DNA of 63,186 nucleotides, counting the filler, from Pelomyxa schiedti (lineage: Eukaryota > Protista > Evosea): the NCBI GenBank assembly GCA_020536535.1. It is 10 parts of 10 records of this genome, joined end to end, with 100 filler letters (N's around TTAATTAATTAA, not from the genome) between each part and the next. Parts side by side here need not be neighbours in the genome. Positions count along the whole stretch, not along the records: positions 1 to 14,896 come from JAHLWZ010000529.1; 9 more parts are not named here. One strand, written 5' to 3'. A program made the position numbers and the translations under genes. The notes beneath the pieces are model-generated. The model was not told the DNA's origin. It saw only the letters and a program-made list of their open reading frames with translations, and ran no database searches. Positions 2,588 through 14,896 of the stretch are shown here, in pieces. Each line of letters begins with the position of its first letter. The stretch's first letter is position 1.

Positions 2588-4264
2588 TTACATACACATT
2601 GAATTTTTCCAGAACTGAAAGTGGGAGGGATCGAAGGGCACAGGGAACTCACCAACATGGAACCCTGTGGAGCAATCATGCACCACGAACTTGATCTCAG
2701 TGGCACGGCCGTGACTCTCTGAACTGTGTGTTGTCGATACAATCAGCTGTGACTGATCCCTGAGGGAAGGAGCTGCCCAAGTGCAAGGCACACTGAGTGT
2801 GGGAGGAGTCGATGTGAGGCTTCCCCCATTGTGGAAAACCTCAAACTTGGGAGCATCTTTCCTCATCATGAAGACGTGGCTGCTCCCAATTGGAAGAACA
2901 GTTGCACCCTCTGGAAACTGAACAACTGGCTCTCCAGTTGCATTATCAACAATGAGGTATGGGTCATAGTGCATTGTGCACATGGAACCATCAGTTCTAC
3001 AGGAGGTGACGCAGCATGGTCTGTCTCTGCAGAGTAGCTTTCTTATCACAACCAGTTCCCCTTTGTTGACACTTGCTTGCAAGTCACAAAATGTCACAGA
3101 GCCTCCAGAGCCTCCTACGGTCTCACACGATTCAAACACCAGAAAAACGTCATCACTGAATGATGAAAAGCGAGCACAGACGATGTATCCAAGCAGAAGC
3201 CCGTCAAAATACCGCTCAGTCATCCCTGACGATGACGCATCACCAAGTCCGACTCCAGGAGCAACCTGCCACACATGCAACCTCCCACCGTTTATCCCCA
3301 CAATCCACTTCCTGTTGCAATACAATGGATGGCATCGGGTCTGGAGTGACGAAACCCTCTTCAGTGCCTCCCCATCACCGCCAACTTCTTCAATGACATG
3401 TTCGTTCAAAAAAGAAGCCCTGATGAAGCGCGACTGACGCAGTATCATCCTGTTGTTTCCCAGAGAGCCATTCACATCACCAGGGGTGTGGAACCAAGAG
3501 TGCCTGACGAGTCCCAGTGTCGGCGACACGCTCACAAACAAGAAGTGCTCCCTGATTGGGAGCCTGAACACAGCCTCGTCAGAAGGCCTGAGGACCCATT
3601 CCTCAGCCCACGCCCTGAACACGGCTGTGGACTGTATCCACTTCACCATCGACGACGGTGGCACACAGCAACGACGACCATCGCCGACAGAATGGATGAT
3701 GGGATGAGTGGCTGGTGGTGTTATTGTGCCGACATCGGCATTGGTGTCATTCCCTGAAAGCGACTCCTGTTCTTCTCTGTCCCCAATTTTGTTGTTGTTG
3801 CTTGTTCTTCTTCTTAATTCGGTTATTGGTGCGCAAATGATTGCCATCACCTGTGATTTTGCTGTTGTTGTTGTTTTTCTTTCTTGCGAGCGTTCAGACG
3901 ACTCGTTGTGTCCCATGGCCGATGGTGGTCCGTTGTTCTTGCCGGTGGATAGATTTCTCCGAATGTTTCTTTGATGGTTCCCACTATGCCCGGCGCTGCC
4001 TGTGCTTCCTAGACCGGCGGCCCGGCGCGGGGCCCGCGCGGTCAGCTTGGACACCAGCCACCTCCAGTCCACCGTCGTGGCCCGGCCGCGCTCGGCGGTC
4101 GACATCCCGCGCCACGCGGACTCGGCGGCCCGGTACCTGTCGTCGGGCACCCCGAACCGCGACGCCGACGCCTGTTGCTGCTGCTGCTGCTGCTGCGGTG
4201 TCACGGTTGTGTGGCTCCCACTCTTGTTCTCCACAACTGCCGCATTGTGGGACGTCTGTTGCAT
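2588..4264 (-). CDS. Expanded hypothetical family A member (N-terminal ARDQF-like motif, probable beta-propeller body)
   Basis: Long intronless ORF, first ATG at 4264. Shares FVSVSPTLGLV, CNRKWIV and C-terminal VHDCSTG motifs with the ORFs at 39.7-49.5 kb. Confidence 0.7.
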   Translation of the reverse strand: MQQTSHNAAVVENKSGSHTTVTPQQQQQQQQASASRFGVPDDRYRAAESAWRGMSTAERGRATTVDWRWLVSKLTARAPRRAAGLGSTGSAGHSGNHQRNIRRNLSTGKNNGPPSAMGHNESSERSQERKTTTTAKSQVMAIICAPITELRRRTSNNNKIGDREEQESLSGNDTNADVGTITPPATHPIIHSVGDGRRCCVPPSSMVKWIQSTAVFRAWAEEWVLRPSDEAVFRLPIREHFLFVSVSPTLGLVRHSWFHTPGDVNGSLGNNRMILRQSRFIRASFLNEHVIEEVGGDGEALKRVSSLQTRCHPLYCNRKWIVGINGGRLHVWQVAPGVGLGDASSSGMTERYFDGLLLGYIVCARFSSFSDDVFLVFESCETVGGSGGSVTFCDLQASVNKGELVVIRKLLCRDRPCCVTSCRTDGSMCTMHYDPYLIVDNATGEPVVQFPEGATVLPIGSSHVFMMRKDAPKFEVFHNGGSLTSTPPTLSVPCTWAAPSLRDQSQLIVSTTHSSESHGRATEIKFVVHDCSTGFHVGEFPVPFDPSHFQFWKNSMCM

Positions 4265-4575
4265 TGTGTGCAACAAAATGCCGTGTTTGATGTGTATGTT
4301 GATGCTTCCGGTGCGTCCTGAGGTGTTGGGGGTGTAGTTTGATATTCCATGCTTCTATCTTATGCTCTAGAAACGGCACTGAGCGCTGGAGGATCAGATG
4401 ACGGTATTGAAGCCTAAGGCGATCTGGTACTCTCCACAACTAACCCGCATCAAAAAGAAAAACAACAGACCGTCACTGAGCCCGAGCCAGTTCGCACTTT
4501 TTATTTTTTGATGGTATGAACCATGTGTATTTTTTTTTTGATCTAACACACAATGAACACAAAAGTTGGGGCACA

Positions 4576-4833: not shown

Positions 4834-5585
4834 ATGAGTACAGATCCAGGTATGCGTTCCCTTTTTCTCTCTATTCAAGCACAAATACACCGAAGCAACC
4901 AAGCAACAGCATGGAAGTGAGGATAACACCCATGTTCGTGTGGTAATGGTACGTGTTGTATTCAACACTTAACATAAAGTAAATAATAATATTCGAACAT
5001 CCAACCAACAAACACACGCAGGTGGGCTTGGATGACTCTGGAAAAAGCGCACTGCTTTACAGGCAACTGCGTGGTGAAGTCACCACCACTACTCCTACAG
5101 ATGGATTCAATGTGGAGACAATTCAACTCAGGAACCGCGATTTTGACATTTGGGATTTGGGTGGAGGGCCAGACATCCGGCGTCACTGGCCACATGTATG
5201 TCCATCCCACTATCTCTACAAGCAGAACCCACAACCAAAACCTAATGACACTTCCATCGGCAATTTGCCGATGGGCTCCCTCATGTAGTTTCTTCTCAAC
5301 ACTCGAGTTCTCATCTGGGTGGTTGATGCACACAACCACGGGCGAATCATTGAATCCTGCACCCTACTTCATGAGATTCTAACAGAGGCCAGGCTCCATG
5401 ACTCCCTTCTGTTGGTCCTGGCAAACAAACAAGACTTGCCAGGCAATGTGAGCAAGAGTGAACTCGCTGACATGCTTGAGTTGAACAACCTTGTGAACAG
5501 GAAGTGGTTCATTCAGCCCACCTCTGCCATTGATGGCACAGGATTTGTGGAGGGTTTGGAGTGGGCCTACTCAATCTTATCATGA
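4834..5585 (+). CDS. ARF/ARL-family small GTPase, multi-exon, divergent
   Basis: Spliced product contains VRVVMVGLDDSGKS (G1), PTDGFNVETI (G2), WDLGGG (G3), LANKQD (G4), TSAIDG (G5). First exon (ATG 4834) is tentative. Confidence 0.88.
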
Positions 5586-5619: not shown

Positions 5620-6220
5620 TCATGAGGAAGAGGTTTTGAAGAGGTATACATACACCTGTCCGTTCTCCAGCTTTGTCCAGCTCTTCACCCTCCACGCACT
5701 GTGTGCCTCAATGTATGTTACCACATTGCCAATTCCTCCAGCACTCAGCTTCTGCAGTGGCATACTGCTCACAAGTTCATTCAAGTCACTGTTTGTTGGA
5801 GCAGTCCTGAGAGACACAGTTGTAACGGAAATGAAGTTGCCACTGCCACAGTACCCCGAATTCGTGCTCACTGCAAATTCAACATAGTCATGAAGACACG
5901 CAGGTGGCTGTGTTGGTTGTGGTGGTTGCCTGTCAGGAAGTTGTATCTGGTAATACTCAGCTTCGTTGTAAACTGCATCAGTGTTGACACTTGGTGGAAC
6001 AAAAAGCTTTCCAGTTCTCATGAAGTCGAGGATAGGTGCAAACAACTTCCCATTCCTGTCAATGAAGAATGCTCCTGTTTCATCCCTTTGTTGTGTGTGT
6101 TTTGGATGGAAGGTTATTTATATGATTCTGTGTTATGTTTGAATCGATTGTGGTGCCCTTGTGTGTTACACAAGTTACATTGTGCTCGTGAATTTCCCAG
6201 AGAGCAGGACAGTGAAGAAC
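5620..6220 (-). pseudogene. KCTD/T1-type BTB protein, 5'-truncated copy
   Basis: FFTVLLSGKFTST|DETGAFFIDRNGKLFAPILDFMRTG present. The VRLNVGG segment is absent and stops lie just upstream; nearly identical to the 11085-11568 copy. Confidence 0.8.
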
Positions 6221-6278
6221 TGGCTCTACTACTGTGTGCGATAACAGATTGTGGTCACCACTGCTGCAGCTGACTGGG

Positions 6279-9200
6279 ATGCCTGCTGACACTACATTGG
6301 CAAAGGTAATGCAGGTCTATCTGGGGATGTAATGCGTTTTGTTTTCTTATTGAACGAACATCCAGGATACGGAAGGGGGACCCGGGGCCTCTGCAGGGCC
6401 AACCACAATGAAGTGTCCCATTTGCAGTGATGATACAGTACTGAAAGTCACAAATGTAGCAGCTCTCATGGTTTGTTGTTTGCATTACGATTTTCCAACA
6501 TCAATTCATTGGTCCCCAGGGGTCAAATGCAACGTCAATTGCCTCTGGGAATTGTTGTCAACAACAGCAACAGATAGCAGAAGCAGGGGCTGACAGTTGC
6601 CCACTGTGTGATGAGGAACCAGCCACACACTCGTGCTCTCTTTGTGGATCGCTTGTTTGTGAGAAGCCCCAGTGTGTCAGAACAATAACAAGGCTCCACA
6701 CGAAGATGGGACACTCGGTTTGTGTACTTTGTGTCTTCCATTTTCTTGTGTTCTCACTCCATTTTCGTCAGTTCACTCCAATTGAAATCAAATCAGCCAA
6801 GACAATCATTCAGTGCCCAGAGCACAACAGACCATTGGAGCTGTTCTGCACACAAGACAACACTCCTGTGTGCTCTCTGTGTGTCCTCTCTGGTTGCCAC
6901 CAGGTTTCTCCCTTCTTGACATTTTAGTTGCTTTATGGTGACGCACAAAAAAGGACACAAGTTTGAAGGCAGTGCACCCAACCATCACAATTTCGGAAGC
7001 AGCCAAAGGAAGGCAGTTGGTCATCACAGAAAGGTCAAAAGAACTTGAGGAGAAGGTCAAAGTGGTGAAAGGTTCCCTTTTGGCAATCACTGAGACAATA
7101 TCTTCTGTCAAGAAGGTTTGTTGTTGGTTCTGCTCTGTGTGAGTGAAATTTAACTCACTCTCTGAATCCCATAAAAATAGAATTGCAGTGAAGCACTCAA
7201 GGCAATGGATGAAGAGTTCTTGCGATTGGAGACACTCCTCCAGAAGAGGCACAAGCAACTCGCTGTTGAATGCATGAACATTGCTGATTCAACTGGTTTC
7301 TGTGCCAAATGGCACTCCATTGTTATTATTCACCAACACACCAACAACACACCAAACAGAGAAAATAATGGACATTCAGCACGATCACCTTGAGAAGTTT
7401 GTTTTCATTGCAGAGGCTGCACTCAAGTCAGCATCAAAGGTGAGCCACACATCACATGACTTTGGTGTGATCAGGTGCTTTGATTCCACATCAAGGGTCA
7501 TCTCTGACTTGGTTTCTCAACTGGTTTGTTTGTCTTTCTCTTTTTTTGTTTGGTGGGAACTGGTTGTTGACTCACTCCAACATCTTTTCTTCAGCTTGAC
7601 CTTTTTGCAGATTCACTTGAAACCATGCTGCAGATCAGAGTTAAACTTCGTGGTCACAAACAACGTTTCGGAGGCAATCAACTCGTTTGGTGCACTCACT
7701 TTTGGTTTGTGTTTTCTCTCTTTTTTTATCTTTTTTTTTTTTAAATCACCAACCAAAAGGAGTTTCAACAACACTGAGCAAATTCAAAGTGACACCATGT
7801 GGTGCTGTTGATGCCGAAACCCATCAAGGAACACCGATCATTGCCGGGAATGAGTGGAAATGCACGGTTGAGTGCACATCTCTCGTGGATGCAACTGGAA
7901 CGCCCATTCCATCCAGTCTTCAAGTCCCATCGTTGACGAGTGCTGGTCTCACTGTTGTTGGTCCTCAGGATGATGGTTGCTCCTCCGCTCTCCTTTGGTT
8001 GTGTGCACAAAATTATTAACAACTCACTCAGTGAACCAACGCCGTTGCAGAATTGTTGATCAAGGTTGGAAGAATCATGGGAAAATGCCACCAAAGTGTG
8101 AAGTGAGTTTCATTCCCAAGCGTAGTGGGAAGCACTCCTTGTTGATTGGAGGTGACACTGAAATTTTCTCATTTGTTGTTGCGGGTTGGTTTTCTCTTCA
8201 TTTTCACCATCGTCGTTCTCAAAGAGTAAACCAACAGAGATCAATGCAAACAAAACGAGAATTTCAGGGTGCTTGAATGGCACTGTTGGAAAACCATTCA
8301 ACTTACACCTCACTGTGTGTATTTTGTTTTCAAATTCAAAATTGCAAAAACACAGTAAAATCATAAAATCATTTTCATTCACCCAGGTGAATCTTTCAGA
8401 TGGAACAATCATACCCACTGACGATGGCACAAGAAGAAGCTCCAGCAGCTGCGTTGGTGTTCTCACATCACAGGTGATTCAAACCAGATTCAGGGTTGTT
8501 TCCACTGATGCTGATGATGGTGCCATTGATTCAACCGATTGTGGTGGGTCAGCCAAATTCCATAATTTCACCAGGTGTGACAGGCCTGACGAAGTTGAGT
8601 TCACATTGCAACATTGTGGAAAGTATCACTTGATTGTTGAGAATGCTGTTTGGCCAAACATGGAATCGTGGGTTCCAATCCCCGGTTGCCCTTTCCTTGT
8701 CACTGTCACACAAGTGTTGTTGTGGGGTGAGATTTTCCGCTTCACTGGCACACACTCACCACCCCAACCACAGTTGATGAACACTGGTGGCCAGCCCGTC
8801 ACAGATGTTGATGTTGAGTCATGCTCACAGTGTCTTGAGTGGCGTGTGAGTGTCACACCACCGACTGCTGCAATCGTGTCAATTGGTTGTCCCACTGCTT
8901 CCTCTAAAACAAACAAACTCCTCCCAAACTCACTCATTATTGCAACAGGAGGAAGCAGTGGTCCTGTTGTTGTGGATGTGGAACCAAAGGTTGTGATGGA
9001 CAACGTGGTTTTGGGTGTTGAAGGTTCATTCTCATCACCACAAGCAGCACCACAAGCAGGTGGTGCTGTGGAGAAAAGTTGCAGTTCCAACAACAACAAC
9101 AAGGAGAAGGTGTGGCAGCACATCTCAGGGTCACCTTTCACTCTCAATTTCAGAGGTATTGTCTCGTTGCTCCTTTCTTCACACACACACCCACCTCCTA

Positions 9201-9649
9201 AATTCACACAAAAACAAAACAAAGTGCCACCACAGGCAAGGAAGATTGGGAGTGTGTTGGCATCATCTGCTGAACGAGGCTTCCGACCTGAGAGGGTGAT
9301 TGATTACTCCCACGATCACAACGCATTCTGGCTCAGCCAGTGGAACAACACGACAGGGCAGTTCCTCGTGTTTGACCTGACAGAGCCCTGTGTTGTGCCT
9401 GTTGTGTGCATCAGGACACGCACTGACCCAGCATCACCCAAGGACGTCACAGTGTCAGTTGGGCCCTCATCGACAGGGCCATGGACAACACTCTCCAAAT
9501 TCACTGCTCAGCAGATCCACGACTGGCAGAGGTTCCCTGTCACCATCAATGCATCGACAACACCACATCGGTGGGTGAGGCTCTTCTTTGACTCCAACCA
9601 TGGCAGTACTGAGTATGTTGTGGTGAGTGGTGTTAAGTTCTGGGACTGA
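6279..9649 (+). CDS. TRIM-like protein: partial RING, two B-boxes, coiled coil, filamin/Ig-like repeats, C-terminal discoidin (F5/8C)/DOC-like domain
   Basis: Multi-exon. Motifs: CPIC; CPLCDEEPATHSCSLC; CPEHNRPLELFCTQDNTPVCSLC..H..H; helical region; CEVSFIPKRSGKHSL; WLSQ..QFLVFDL..WVRLFFDSNHG. 5' end truncated relative to the paralog at 9745. Confidence 0.78.
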
Positions 9650-9744: not shown

Positions 9745-10984
9745 ATGAGCCAACGCAACGCGTGCGAGGATGACATCATCGAGGACAGCCTGTCGTGGGA
9801 CACCTCGTGCGCCCTGTGCCTCTCCCCTCTCCCCCCTCCCCCACTCACCCATCACCAGCATCATCAGCAGCAACAGCAGGACCGAAACCGCTATCACCCA
9901 ACCACCGCCATCGCAGCCGCACCCACAGATCTTCCCCCGCTTCCTTTGACGCGGTACCTGCCCGACGTCGTCGTCGTCGAGCTCCACCCAGAGCCCAGCG
10001 TACCCCCGCCGTCACAGCCCGGGTCGTCATCAGTTGCCACAACAACAACACCACACCAACAAAAACAACAGGGCGCCACGGGTGGTGGCGGCGGCGGCTG
10101 CGGTTCTGATGGTGGTGGTTGCGGCGGCAACAACAACACAAGCGAGGTTGCGCGCAACAAACACAACGACCACGGCCACCACCGAGTGTGCGGTTGTTGC
10201 GCGCGCCTGTTGGCAAACAACGCTCTCGCCACCGCTTCGTTCTCGTCGTTGCTCACCCAAGCTGCGGATCGCCATGGTGATGGTCGTGGTGGTCGTGGCT
10301 GTGGTGGCACTGGCGAGGAAACACGGGAGCGAGAGGACGGTGCGGTGGCAACGAAACCAGGAAGAACGGGAGGGGGTGGAGTGGGTGAGGGTGGCGTGAC
10401 GACGCAGCCTGGTCACACTGCTTCTGGTGCTGCTGCTGTGGACACAACTGGCCCTACTGCTGTGAGTGATACCAGGTTGTGGTCACCACTGCTGTTGACA
10501 ACTTCAGCAAAGCTAAAGAAGGTCTGCGTGTGAGTGGTGTGATGTCTGCACCTTGTGTTTGAGTGGGGGGGCTTCTCACGCATGGATAACCAGCCAACTA
10601 GGTTTCAGCTGAAGAGTCAAAGTCATCCACAGAGCCACTGCAGCACTCAACACTTGCAATGAAGTGTCCAATTTGTGGTGATGATTCTCTGCTGAATGTC
10701 ACAAATGAAAGAATTGGAGTTCCCAAGGTTTCTCTTTTCCAGCTTCCCAGTTTCGAACATCAACTTACTTTTCCTCTTTTTCCAAGAACCAGCAGGAGTC
10801 AGAAGCTACTTCCAGTGATTCTAGCAGTCATTATCAACAGCAACTGACAGAACAAGATCACCAATGACGACTTGTGCCCACTGTGTGATGAAGAACTGGC
10901 CACACACTCGTGCTCTCTTTGTGGATTGCTTGTTTGTGAGAAGCCCCAGTGTGTCAGAACAATAACGAGGCAACATATAAAGAC
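9745..10984 (+). CDS. TRIM-like paralog, 5' part (split RING and B-box 1), cut by scaffold gap
   Basis: CALC...HRVCGCC...CPIC, then CPLCDEELATHSCSLC. Homologous to 6218-6710. Confidence 0.72.
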
Positions 10985-11084
10985 NNNNNNNNNNNNNNNN
11001 NNNNNNNNNNNNNNNNNNNNNNNNNNNNNNNNNNNNNNNNNNNNNNNNNNNNNNNNNNNNNNNNNNNNNNNNNNNNNNNNNNNN

Positions 11085-11568
11085 CATAGTCATGAAGACA
11101 CGCAGGTGGCTGTGTTGGTTGTGGTGGTTGCCTGTCAGGAAGTTGTATCTGGTAATACTCAGCTTCGTTGTAAACTGCATCAGTGTTGACACTTGGTGGA
11201 ACAAACAGCTTTCCAGTCCTCATGAAGTCGAGGATAGGTGCAAACAACTTCCCATTCCTGTCAATGAAGAATGCTCCTGTTTCATCCCTTTGTTGTGTGT
11301 AGTGTTTGTTTTGGATTGAATGTTATTTAAAATTATTTAAATTATTATGTTTGTCAATCAATTGTGGTGCTCTTGTGTGTTACACAAGTTACATTGTGCT
11401 CGTGAATTTCCCAGAGAGCAGGACAGTGAAGAACGACGACGGCCCGTGTCCCATCATCATCGTGAGTGTCGTCCTCGTGGTGGTGAACATACGCCCACCA
11501 ACGTTCAGTCTCACAATGTCACTCCTCCCCTGGCAACTCTCATCACGCGTTGCTGTTGAAGTGTCCAT
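11085..11568 (-). CDS. KCTD/T1-type BTB protein (3' end in gap)
   Basis: IVRLNVGGRMFTTTRTTL...FFTVLLSGKF|FFIDRNGKLFAPILDFMRTG; one intron. Confidence 0.88.
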
Positions 11569-11652: not shown

Positions 11653-12361
11653 TCATGAGGATGTTTTGAAGAGGTATATTTGCACGTGTTTGTCACTTGG
11701 AAGAATCCAGTTCTTCACTCTCCAGGCACTGTGTGCCTCAATGTATGTTGCCACGTTGGCAAGGCCTGCAGTGCCCAGCTGCTGCAGGGGCATGCTGCTC
11801 ATAAGTTCCTTCAAGTCACTGTCGATTGGAGGAACTACAACAGACACGGTTGTCACACTGACCCATGTACCACTGCCACTCCAGCCCGAGTTTGTGTGCA
11901 CGGCAACTTCAAGATAGTCATGGATATTTGGTTGTTGTTGTGGCTGCGGTGGTGGCCTGTCAGGAAGGTGTATCTGGTAATACTCAGCCTCGTTGTAAAC
12001 TGCATCAGTGTTGACACTCGGCGGCACGAACAGCTTCCCAGTCCTCATGAAGTCAAGGATTGGTGCAAACAAGTCCCCGTTCCTGTCAATGAAGAACGCT
12101 CCTGTGTCATCCCTTTGTTCAAGGTGTTAGAGCAACAAAAGGAGGGGGAGGTAGGGCCTGTGTAGTTGCCAGAGTGGGGGAGAGAAAGTGTTGTTCCTTT
12201 TGTATTCGATACGTTGTGCTCGTGAATTTTCCAGAGAGCAGGACGGTGAAGAACGACGACTCAGAGCTCATCGAGAGTGTCGTCCTCGTTGTGATGAACA
12301 CACGACCTCCAACATTCAGTCTCACCATCTCTCTTCTCGCATCAGCCGTTGACGCAGTCAT
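11653..12361 (-). CDS. KCTD/T1-type BTB protein
   Basis: VRLNVGGRVFITTRTTL...FFIDRNGDLFAPILDFMRTG...EAEYYQI; same intron position as its neighbours. Confidence 0.9.
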
Positions 12362-12507
12362 CACAAATGCGTTTTGTAACAAAGATTCTTCTCAGAAGAC
12401 ACAGCACCTGAGACTACTTGGAACTGATTCTTGGAACAAGTAAATTAGTCTCACCACAAAATGCACTGCACTCCTTTTGTAAATAACAAGCTATGATGGA
12501 AATGGAC

Positions 12508-13212
12508 TCAGCTGGATGATGAGGGTTTGATGAGGTACAACCACGCTATGCATCTGTCATCTGGCTTTGTCCAGCTCTTCACTCTCCACCCACTGTGAGC
12601 CTCAATGTATGTCACCACGCTGGCAATGCCTGAGGCACCCACCTCCTTCAAGGGCATGCTGCTCATAAAGTCCTTCAAGTCACTGCTTGTGGGAGGTGTT
12701 TGGACCGACAGTTGGGTCTCTTCCGCGTAGGTACTGGCTTTGTACGCACAGATTCCAACGAAGTCATGTATAACCGGGGGTTTTGGTTGGTTCCGTGTTG
12801 GCTGTGGTGGTTGCCTGTCAGGAAGTTGTATCTGGTAATACTCAGCCTCGTTGTAAACTGCATCAGCGCTGACACTCGGTGGGACAAACAGCTTTCCAGT
12901 CCTCATGAAGTCAAGGATGGGTGCAAACAACTTCCCATTCCTGTCAATGAAGAATGCTCCTGTTTCATCCCTTTTTTGTGTGTGTTTTTTGTAGTGACAG
13001 ATGATATTTAGTATTACCCTGGGACGGTTGATTTTTGTTTGAGGTTAATACATTGTGCTCGTGAATTTCCCGGAGAGCAGGACAGTGAAGAACGACGATG
13101 ACGCCGGGTTCATTGTGAGTGTCGTCCTCGTCGTGGCGAACACGCAACCACCAACATTAAGTCTCACAACGTCACTCTCACTCCTCGTGGTGGTTGTTGA
13201 GGTACGGTCCAT
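12508..13212 (-). CDS. KCTD/T1-type BTB protein
   Basis: VVRLNVGGCVFATTRTTL...FFIDRNGKLFAPILDFMRTG; same intron position. Confidence 0.9.
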
Positions 13213-13286: not shown

Positions 13287-14896
13287 CTAACGCCAAGAGC
13301 ACACATTTGGGAAGTCGGGCCTGGACATGAGCCAGTCAACAACACGGTGTGTTCCCCAGAATGGCTCCTCAAACCCAGGGACTGTCATTCCCAGTGTGCA
13401 GCACACAACACCTCCCACAACAACACCACCACCCACCCCTTCTTCTGTTTCTGCTGTTGTGTGATGATTCCCACCGCCGCAGCTGTTGTTGTGGATACTG
13501 TTGTTGGCTGTGTGTTGTTGGTCTACTGAGGAGGAGGTTGTGGGTGATGGAGGAGGTGTTGATGCTGATGCGTTGGTTGGAATCACAACGATGTTGTAGA
13601 GGCATGTCACATGAGGGGATGGTGCTGCCTGGCTGAGAACGGTGGGGAGGCACCATGTGTCATTGACAAGGATTGGGTGGTCTGGTGTGATTTCAAGGAG
13701 AGGGGACTGGCTTCCGGTGGTGGTGCTTGTCATTTTCCAGTGGACAATCGGAACAGGGCATTTGAGAACACACCTGTGTGGTATTGGTTTGGGGGTATTT
13801 TTGGGGGAGGAAAAAGACCACCTCCAAATGCAATTAACAAAGGCAGTGTCATCGCAGTTGGTACCAGATATGACCTGATCTCCCACCTTAAGTTCCTTCA
13901 TTTTGCAAAGCTGTCCATTTGCCAGAGTGATTGTTGCATTTGGGCCAAAGCAGACACTCTCTGGCGGATTCTTCATTTTTTTTAGAATTAGGCAGAGTAG
14001 AATGTGCATGGGAGGGGAATGTAGTACATAATCAGGAAGAGGATCCAGTTCCAGTGGAATGTAACTGTGTTTGTTGTCAAAGGATAGCTTGCTGCTGTTA
14101 CTTATTCCGGAGCTGTTCCAATACCCTGTTCTGGCATTTGTCCACAGTGGTTCTGTCTTGCAAAGATGGTAAAACTTCTTGCAGGTGCGTGTCAGTCTTA
14201 TGAGTGTTACATAATCCAGGAAACTCAGGATTTCTTTGCTCTCGTTAGTGACAGTAAACGATAAAAACAAAACAGAAAACAAAAGCAAACCGAGCCAGAG
14301 GGCATTTGGTAGGACACCCAAACGAGTTTGCACCACGGTTTCTATTGAAATGTTCGGTTCAGGGGCAGTAGCTGCCCAAACCCTATAATGCTTTAAAATC
14401 CGGGGTTGATTTGGGGTTTTTCTACCTAGGCTTAGACTTCCCAGAAAAACTGAAAAAACTGAAAAAGCCCCCTTTTTTTGGTCTTCTTGTGGGACAGGTC
14501 AATCGGGCTCTTATTGCTGCAATGAATAAATCGTCACAGCCCTGACCTGTGTGAGAGCTAATTGACGCGTTCATTCAGAAAACAACAGCAGCAAGCAACG
14601 ACCGTTGCAAACCTGCACTGGAAATATCCAAATGTTCCCATGTTCAATGAAGCCTTTACTCCTTCCTCAAAGGTGACAATAGATCCCTTGTTCCAGGTTT
14701 TTTGGTTCATAGATGGCACTGAATTACCTCGGTTGCAGAGGTGCATTCACTCGAGGAAACAAGGTCTAATTTCAGCCCAACAAGGAGAACAGGCACCTCC
14801 ATTTCTATGCATTAGAAATAGGTGAGAGTTTTATTCAGGAAAGGCATACATTGGGGCTTTTTTCTTTGAATGTGGAATAGAATGTTCCAAGTTTTG
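13287..14896 (-). CDS. Rho-like small GTPase (C-terminal half) + F-box + Hint (Vint-type) fusion protein, 5'-partial
   Basis: Phase-compatible exons 14896-14850, 14796-14728, 14686-14613, 14557-14426, 14382-14291, 14233-13287. Product: SPNVPVLLVGLKLDL..IVTFEEG..YFQCSSHTGQGCDDLFIAAIRA, then LGVLPNALWLEILSFLDYVTLIRLTRTCKKFYHLC, then CFGPNATITLANG..LKVGDQV..ITPDHPI..LYNIV..VCCTLG..PFWGT. Confidence 0.8.

Follow-up and report, generated by a model that had tools for sequence, protein, structure and literature searches.

A probably Rac-derived GTPase joined to an F-box and a Vint-type Hint domain: a conserved and expanded gene family of Pelomyxa schiedti with predicted autoprocessing

We wanted to know whether a small GTPase, an F-box and a Hint domain that lie side by side in the genome of Pelomyxa schiedti form one protein, and what a domain of the autoprocessing type might do there. 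The locus belongs to the window, by which we mean the whole stretch of 63,186 nucleotides of DNA that was analysed. The initial annotation had described it as a candidate self-cleaving, GTPase-coupled SCF adaptor. We found that positions 13287-14896 of contig JAHLWZ010000529.1 encode, on the minus strand, a small GTPase of probable Rac descent followed by an F-box and by a Hint domain of Vint type, and that the gene continues past the contig end at 14896.

The window holds eight exons of this gene, which are open, phase-compatible and separated by GT-AG introns of 41-57 nt. The exons listed in the initial annotation were all recovered; up to the F-box they are open, have GT-AG ends and show the compatible phases described there. 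Its count of six was too low, as it had missed the introns 14027-13971 and 13821-13774, which are in frame and contain no stop. The first stretch of coding sequence is the 3' part of GTPase exon 5 (14850..14896), which is cut by the contig end and starts on the stretches C1954 and C473 described below. It is followed by an exon with the G4 motif GLKLD (exon 14728..14796, motif 14778-14764), both flanking introns of which are common to paralogues, by an exon for the shortened Rho-insert region, helix alpha4 and the start of G5 (QC; 14613..14686), and by an exon for helix alpha5 and a basic-aromatic motif, KKGGFFSFF (exon 14426..14557, motif 14478-14452). The last of these is represented in RNA contig L031 and has no CaaX. 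A linker intron of 43 nt in phase 2 (14383..14425) separates the GTPase from the F-box and is retained in this sole RNA contig. The next exon (14291..14382) contains a linker and the start of the F-box and is similar to the end of the final Kelch exon in the long paralogues. The remainder of the F-box, matched by Pfam, and the linker to Vint lie in 14028..14233. The F-box domain spans 14312-14142 and is interrupted by the intron 14290-14234.

The Vint domain is divided over two exons. The N-terminal one (13822..13970) carries block A and the predicted scissile Val/Cys1 bond (Cys codon 13952-13950). The C-terminal one (13287..13773) carries TPDH (13688-13677), block F with YN, a disordered insert, CCTLG (13403-13389), which occupies the place of the intein His-Asn, and a Vint-specific tail preceding the stop codon (13289-13287). 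Every motif named before was found at its position, including QC/SS of G5, AIRA, LYNIV and PFWGT. Summed exon lengths gave a full gene of approximately 515 aa, in which Vint counted from Cys1 takes 205 aa. The NCBI model Pelo_6742 (P0008) is wrong, as it omits the exon 14557-14426 and begins within the GTPase. A pseudogene was ruled out by the open exons and a dN/dS of approximately 0.2.

Over its last 121 nt, up to 14896, the contig is identical to the ends of two allelic stretches, C1954 and C473, and DNA contigs from two runs reach 643 nt past 14896. The initial annotation had expected G1-G3 beyond the contig end. They were found there, on GTPase exons 1-4 and the start of exon 5 (G000:C1954:1935-2496, plus strand; allele C473), which include the ATG, the G1 motif, switch I and a degenerate G3. 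The exons on C1954/C473 sit at paralogue intron positions; one on C1954 matches Pfam Ras (E 3.8e-4), and the short GTPase exons of the window gave no match when searched singly against Pfam. Our searches were run per exon or through reference proteins (the RNA-derived P0001 and database paralogues), and the intron maps are protein-to-genome alignments of database proteins, whose gene models are predictions.

The G1 P-loop GPPGVGKT is intact on C1954/C473, and G4 GLKLD and G5 QCSS are present in the window. The predicted G3 exon is the sole candidate that has no stop, a suitable length and phase 2 at both ends, and in both alleles it gives WDACD. Because the G3 Gly and the catalytic Gln are lost in this predicted exon, a normal GTP cycle is doubtful, and the GTPase of the window gene is, judging from its sequence, probably GTPase-deficient; the earlier description as "GTPase-coupled" is weakened for this copy. 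Altered G motifs occur in RhoBTB as well. In the long paralogues G3 is canonical (DTAGQ). One of them, P0179, shares introns with the window gene, and its GTPase is a canonical Rac that matches Rac1 (E 1e-56). For the short paralogue P0004, R-Ras and Rac1 tied, and the GTPase tree is unrooted and contains no reference subfamilies. A C-terminal CaaX was absent in both the fused and the intron-retained reading, which agrees with the initial annotation, and the basic-aromatic motif after the GTPase is conserved in the family.

Further, we asked whether the three domains are made together. RNA contig L031, with a depth of 6.6, spans the gene from the final GTPase exon to beyond the stop codon, therefore the locus is a single transcription unit. 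In this contig the introns 14290-14234, 14027-13971 and 13821-13774 are spliced, yet intron 14425-14383 is kept and places a TAG (14427-14425) in frame with the GTPase. On this observation one may build the view that a stand-alone GTPase, produced through the retained linker intron, is the main product of the locus and that the fusion is rare or absent. We consider it very unlikely. L031 is a single contig of low depth, derived from the sequencing of a single-cell library, and assembled contigs drop variants. The linker intron appears genuine, because a phase-2 intron is found at the equivalent place in 14 short paralogues, among 11 shared intron positions; its splice sites are ordinary (31st and 65th percentile of 97 paralogue introns, similar to RNA-verified introns); in paralogue C442, which lacks the linker intron, one exon holds both the end of the GTPase and the start of the F-box; the open frame upstream of the F-box contains no Met; and the F-box/Vint exons, which have no start codon of their own, show dN/dS of approximately 0.2 against the nearest paralogue (other pairs 0.18-0.27; Vint of one close pair 0.46). 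The F-box and Vint exons are under purifying selection.

On the evidence of gene structure, the GTPase, F-box and Vint are very probably made as one fused protein. The initial annotation had placed them in one gene, had noticed the missing start codon and had proposed splicing at 14426/14382; the first two points stood, and the third is made likely by the conservation of the intron in the paralogues, whereas L031 retains it. Regulated retention of the linker intron, yielding a GTPase-only form, is possible. A search for RNA contigs of short-form paralogues found none. We rejected two separate genes, one for the GTPase and one for F-box-Vint, since one RNA contig covers both, the second would have no start codon and the introns are conserved. 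An annotation artefact was also rejected, as a second organism, joins inside single exons and a spliced paralogue mRNA speak against it.

The Hint domain of the window is a true Vint by profile, motifs, modelled fold and a C-terminal extension of Vint type. It matched Pfam Vint (PF14623) with 38.1 bits against a curated cut-off of 27 (E 1.7e-9), and the family profile matched 8R2C, the Tetrahymena Vint structure, with E 1.9e-23. The Vint model had a pLDDT of 85.8 and superposed on 8R2C with Z 21.6 (1.7 A over 148 residues); the next structural matches, namely BIL2, inteins and Hedgehog, reached Z of 12.5 at most. Conservation extends into the tail beyond the Hint horseshoe, which can be aligned with 8R2C up to its end. 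In an alignment of 26 Vints with a mean column identity of 23%, Cys1, Thr and His of block B and Asn of block F never vary, and Cys1 is present in the short-form loci. Position 4 of block F is Asn, not Asp. The N-S shift is driven by Cys1 and block-B residues (PMC4031507), and both Cys1 and TxxH are preserved as the initial annotation had stated.

Block-G His-Asn, a +1 nucleophile and a C-extein are absent, and intein alignments stop at model residue 170, the Thr of CCTLG. Intein-type splicing was excluded, because His-Asn and the +1 nucleophile are missing and inteins align only up to this Thr; the earlier expectation of cleavage or adduction rather than splicing is in line with this. Hedgehog-type sterol transfer was also rejected. 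The position of Hedgehog Asp46 holds Arg or Lys (by profile alignment only), we found no sterol-recognition region, the Pfam Hint score was under the cut-off, and the N-terminal part is a GTPase and not a secreted domain. Pfam searches of the exons of the window gene and of P0001 detected neither vWA nor Vwaint. Canonical Vwaint-Vint genes are present at other loci in the genome, and none of them belongs to the Rac-F-box-Vint family.

The F-box was detected as F-box-like by Pfam on the window (E 5.3e-7, above the curated cut-off) and on the RNA-derived protein P0001 (E 3.4e-10; PF12937 40 bits, PF00646 38 bits). With these values and those for Vint, the profile and structure checks proposed in the initial annotation gave matches for the F-box and for Vint, respectively for the F-box by profile and for Vint by both. 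The genome contains five Skp1 loci. The window protein has no BTB domain; neighbouring BTB_2 genes are separate. Small BTB_2 (KCTD-like) genes with introns, at least four in number, stand in tandem directly downstream on the minus strand (5620-6270, ~10950-11250, 11653-12382 and 12508-13210), three of them with a Pfam BTB_2 match, and they are possible Cul3 adaptors adjoining the F-box gene. Other neighbours are an Arf-family GTPase gene with at least two exons (5022-5585, plus strand), a 487-aa intronless ORF (8186-9649, plus strand) with a C-terminal Sad1/F5-8 type C-like domain, and a 562-aa ORF (2588-4276, minus strand) with no Pfam match. A paralogue of the latter (74% nucleotide identity; L033 3-901) is located just upstream of the gene start on C1954/C473, and the region is therefore flanked by related genes.

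The gene is not alone in the genome. We counted 15 loci of the short form, GTPase-F-box-Vint, a few of which may be alleles or decaying copies, and four loci of a long form, Rac-Kelch-F-box-Vint, with the GTPase-Kelch and Kelch-F-box joins inside exons. A fully spliced Kelch-F-box-Vint RNA contig of a long paralogue is present. Another long subfamily comprises six annotated members, together with approximately 12 contigs showing Kelch, F-box and Vint matches in this order. By sequence, P. schiedti, an anaerobic amoeba, carries dozens of genes of the Rac-F-box-Vint family; in NCBI the proteins are labelled only 'hypothetical protein' or 'rac gtpase'. The NCBI models of the family are often mis-spliced: P0005 is without Cys1, P0032 is without Vint, and in P0010 the Vint end is swapped for a DUF4403 stretch.

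We also found an intact Rac-Kelch-F-box-Vint gene in a second, environmental eukaryote (ENA ERZ21831265, ctg80510l; L066 2350-5330). It has introns in common with the Pelomyxa copies and no DNA match to them. The contig has a GC content of 39% and introns mostly of 35-45 nt, and its source is possibly an unsampled pelobiont. In a profile search of 1.84 billion representatives, all proteins among the best 150 matches that combine F-box and Vint were Pelomyxa entries. In two Vint proteins, which begin with WWE or WD40, Vint is preceded by an F-box that is interrupted and scores weakly (Pfam E 0.0097 and 2.4e-4; HHalign 84%). Across the family the F-box and Vint thus form the constant cassette, and the variable modules, Rac, Rac with Kelch and probably WWE and WD40, stand N-terminal to it.

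Vint-less relatives that end in the linker after the F-box were found in Pelomyxa (C442; L058 1001-2270) and in the second organism (a Rho-Kelch-F-box gene; L065 3022-5453). Since the Kelch block is flanked by phase-2 introns and the long forms retain canonical G motifs, the structure suggests that the short form was derived by loss of the Kelch exons; the trees did not distinguish loss of Kelch from its gain.

Vint was also observed in other contexts. There are ankyrin-Vint genes (L046 on G000:C672, P0011 and P0021), and in the tree the Vint domains of P0011 and short-form P0007 are sisters (100/96), the outcome of a recent domain swap that did not include the F-box. Vint proteins with an unannotated N-terminal region (P0018, P0020, P0025, P0027, P0028, P0030 and P0034) come from Pelomyxa, a cryptophyte, a haptophyte and metagenomes. 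Several of them have a short helical motif which by eye is like a cullin-adaptor box; neither Pfam nor the Atlas gave a match to this motif, and the Atlas gave none for the N-terminal domain of the cryptophyte P0027.

We propose, tentatively and with a probability of approximately 0.45, that the protein is a self-processing SCF adaptor, targeted by its N-terminal part, from which Vint releases itself at the Val/Cys bond as a maturation or on/off step. The F-box would bind Skp1. The Rac-derived domain and the basic-aromatic motif would target the adaptor to membranes, partners or substrates, and the Kelch propeller would add to this targeting in the long paralogues. Cys1 with the block-B Thr and His would turn the Val-Cys peptide bond into a thioester, and an outside nucleophile would resolve it, so that the 205-aa Vint is freed and a GTPase-F-box protein of approximately 310 aa is left. 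The simplest form of such a step would be hydrolysis triggered by a ligand or partner. We argue from the gene structures that the Vint-less copies resemble the predicted cleavage product and that Vint is a removable tail, not a receptor. The placement of Hint as substrate-binding domain, put forward in the initial annotation, is weakened by these copies in two organisms and by the N-terminal position of the variable modules. Several points count against this proposal: the sole RNA contig of the gene retains the linker intron, the conserved Vint tail may serve to bring an adduct rather than water, and the Vint-less copies could be in decay. The full-length AlphaFold model of paralogue P0004 had a pLDDT of 54, therefore contact between the domains is unsupported.

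The same thioester may have other fates. If the Vint tail holds a small molecule or a lipid, this could attack the thioester and leave a Hedgehog-like modified C-terminus in place of prenylation, as the initial annotation had considered. The tail that is conserved and aligned with 8R2C to its end would fit this, as would the absence of CaaX and the fact that Vint was set beside Hog domains (PMC2362128). We regard such an adduct as unlikely, since Arg or Lys stands at the Hedgehog Asp46 position in the profile alignment, the sterol-recognition region is lacking, the stretch after the GTPase already carries a conserved basic-aromatic motif, and the new C-terminus would come after the F-box, approximately 100 residues from the GTPase. 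Alternatively, a lysine or N-terminus of a partner protein could be the nucleophile, which would fix the F-box to its target and pull the target to SCF. For the Tetrahymena BIL2 Hint such joining is documented: its N-flank becomes attached to lysines on other proteins, one of them a Ras GTPase (PMC8616854). In the Pelomyxa protein the predicted scissile bond is approximately 45 residues past the F-box, at the usual substrate site, and a large diverging family is compatible with many targets. However, BIL2 belongs to a different Hint class, which has a terminal Asn, capture would be single turnover, the variable, receptor-like modules of the family are N-terminal, and Vint-less copies occur, which makes covalent capture distinctly unlikely in our opinion. 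Finally, Vint may not cleave in vivo at all; the F-box protein would then stay intact, with Vint as a folded module for binding or redox sensing. Vint does occupy the usual position of a substrate receptor, its cleavage in all family members is a prediction from sequence, and block F has Asn, not Asp, at position 4. The invariance of Cys1, Thr and His across deep divergence would be hard to explain without catalysis, and we find this option quite improbable.

We compared the family with known systems. Vint genes were defined as vWA-Vwaint-Vint, some with a U-box (Burglin 2008, PMC2362128). These proteins likewise have a C-terminal Vint with Cys1 and TxxH, the same fold and the same tail, and the U-box-vWA-Vint proteins (a 62-member U-box cluster in the Atlas) also tie Vint to a ubiquitin-ligase module. 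The Pelomyxa family differs in having no vWA or Vwaint, in that its E3 module is an F-box near Vint, and in its N-terminal Rac-type GTPase with or without Kelch. Among the Atlas Vint clusters, those most similar in shape, U-box-vWA-Vint included, are for the most part assigned to giant viruses (Nucleocytoviricota). A GTPase-Hog fusion, GmGIN1, is cited in PMC2362128, and its family is expanded in Glomeromycotina (PMC8778642). In these AIG1-Hint proteins (MEROPS C46), too, a GTPase precedes a Hint autoprocessing domain, a signal peptide is absent and the expansion is lineage-specific, but their GTPase is of AIG1/IAN type, their Hint is of Hog type and they lack an F-box. Because the Hint class differs, the two fusions are most likely of separate origin. 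Neither this GTPase-Hint precedent nor the E3-Vint one was cited in the initial annotation.

Small GTPases fused to cullin adaptors are also known from RhoBTB, which combines Rho with BTB and acts as a Cul3 adaptor (PMC1257465), and from Rab40, which combines Rab with a SOCS box (PMC6088270). The adaptor of the Pelomyxa family is instead an F-box (Skp1-Cul1), and neither RhoBTB nor Rab40 has an autoprocessing domain; the window protein contains no tandem BTB of RhoBTB type after the GTPase. Naegleria lovaniensis P0181 (C9374_001827) has the same three non-Hint modules in another order, Kelch-F-box-Rac, with the GTPase last, a CaaX-like end and no Vint; the comparison is one of modules, not of descent. 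Another amoebal fusion of a small GTPase and an F-box is Nematostelium gracile P0127 (F-box-FYVE-Ras). Tetrahymena BUBL/BIL2 (PMC8616854), the second-best structural match (Z 12.5), also links a eukaryotic Hint to the ubiquitin system, but it belongs to the BIL class with a terminal Asn and has ubiquitin-like domains on its flanks. We found no GTPase-F-box-Vint or F-box-Vint protein in the literature outside subscription papers, nor as an Atlas cluster, which bears out the earlier impression that the architecture is undescribed. The window protein has a true Vint, yet it is not a vWA-Vint protein, an intein, a Hog protein or a RhoBTB.

In summary, each pairwise link has a precedent, and the whole appears from sequence to be a conserved, expanded and undescribed Vint autoprocessing design, the activity of which is predicted. 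Vint is found across protists, fungi and giant viruses, and we found no account of its cellular job. Here a Vint that keeps its catalytic residues stands on a compact protein, the other domains of which are biochemically known, with natural Vint-less controls, which makes Vint function directly testable. It is rather unlikely that F-box and Vint are a mobile cassette, with a thioester through which the GTPase-F-box fragment becomes covalently bound to a small molecule or a target protein; if true, the cassette would be a self-installing, Rac-switched SCF degron or anchor with dozens of specificities in pelobiont amoebae. With its F-box as predicted adaptor, the family adds a third design of small GTPase with cullin adaptor, beside RhoBTB (Cul3) and Rab40 (Cul5), and together with U-box-vWA-Vint it suggests that Vint self-processing has been tied to ubiquitin ligases more than once.
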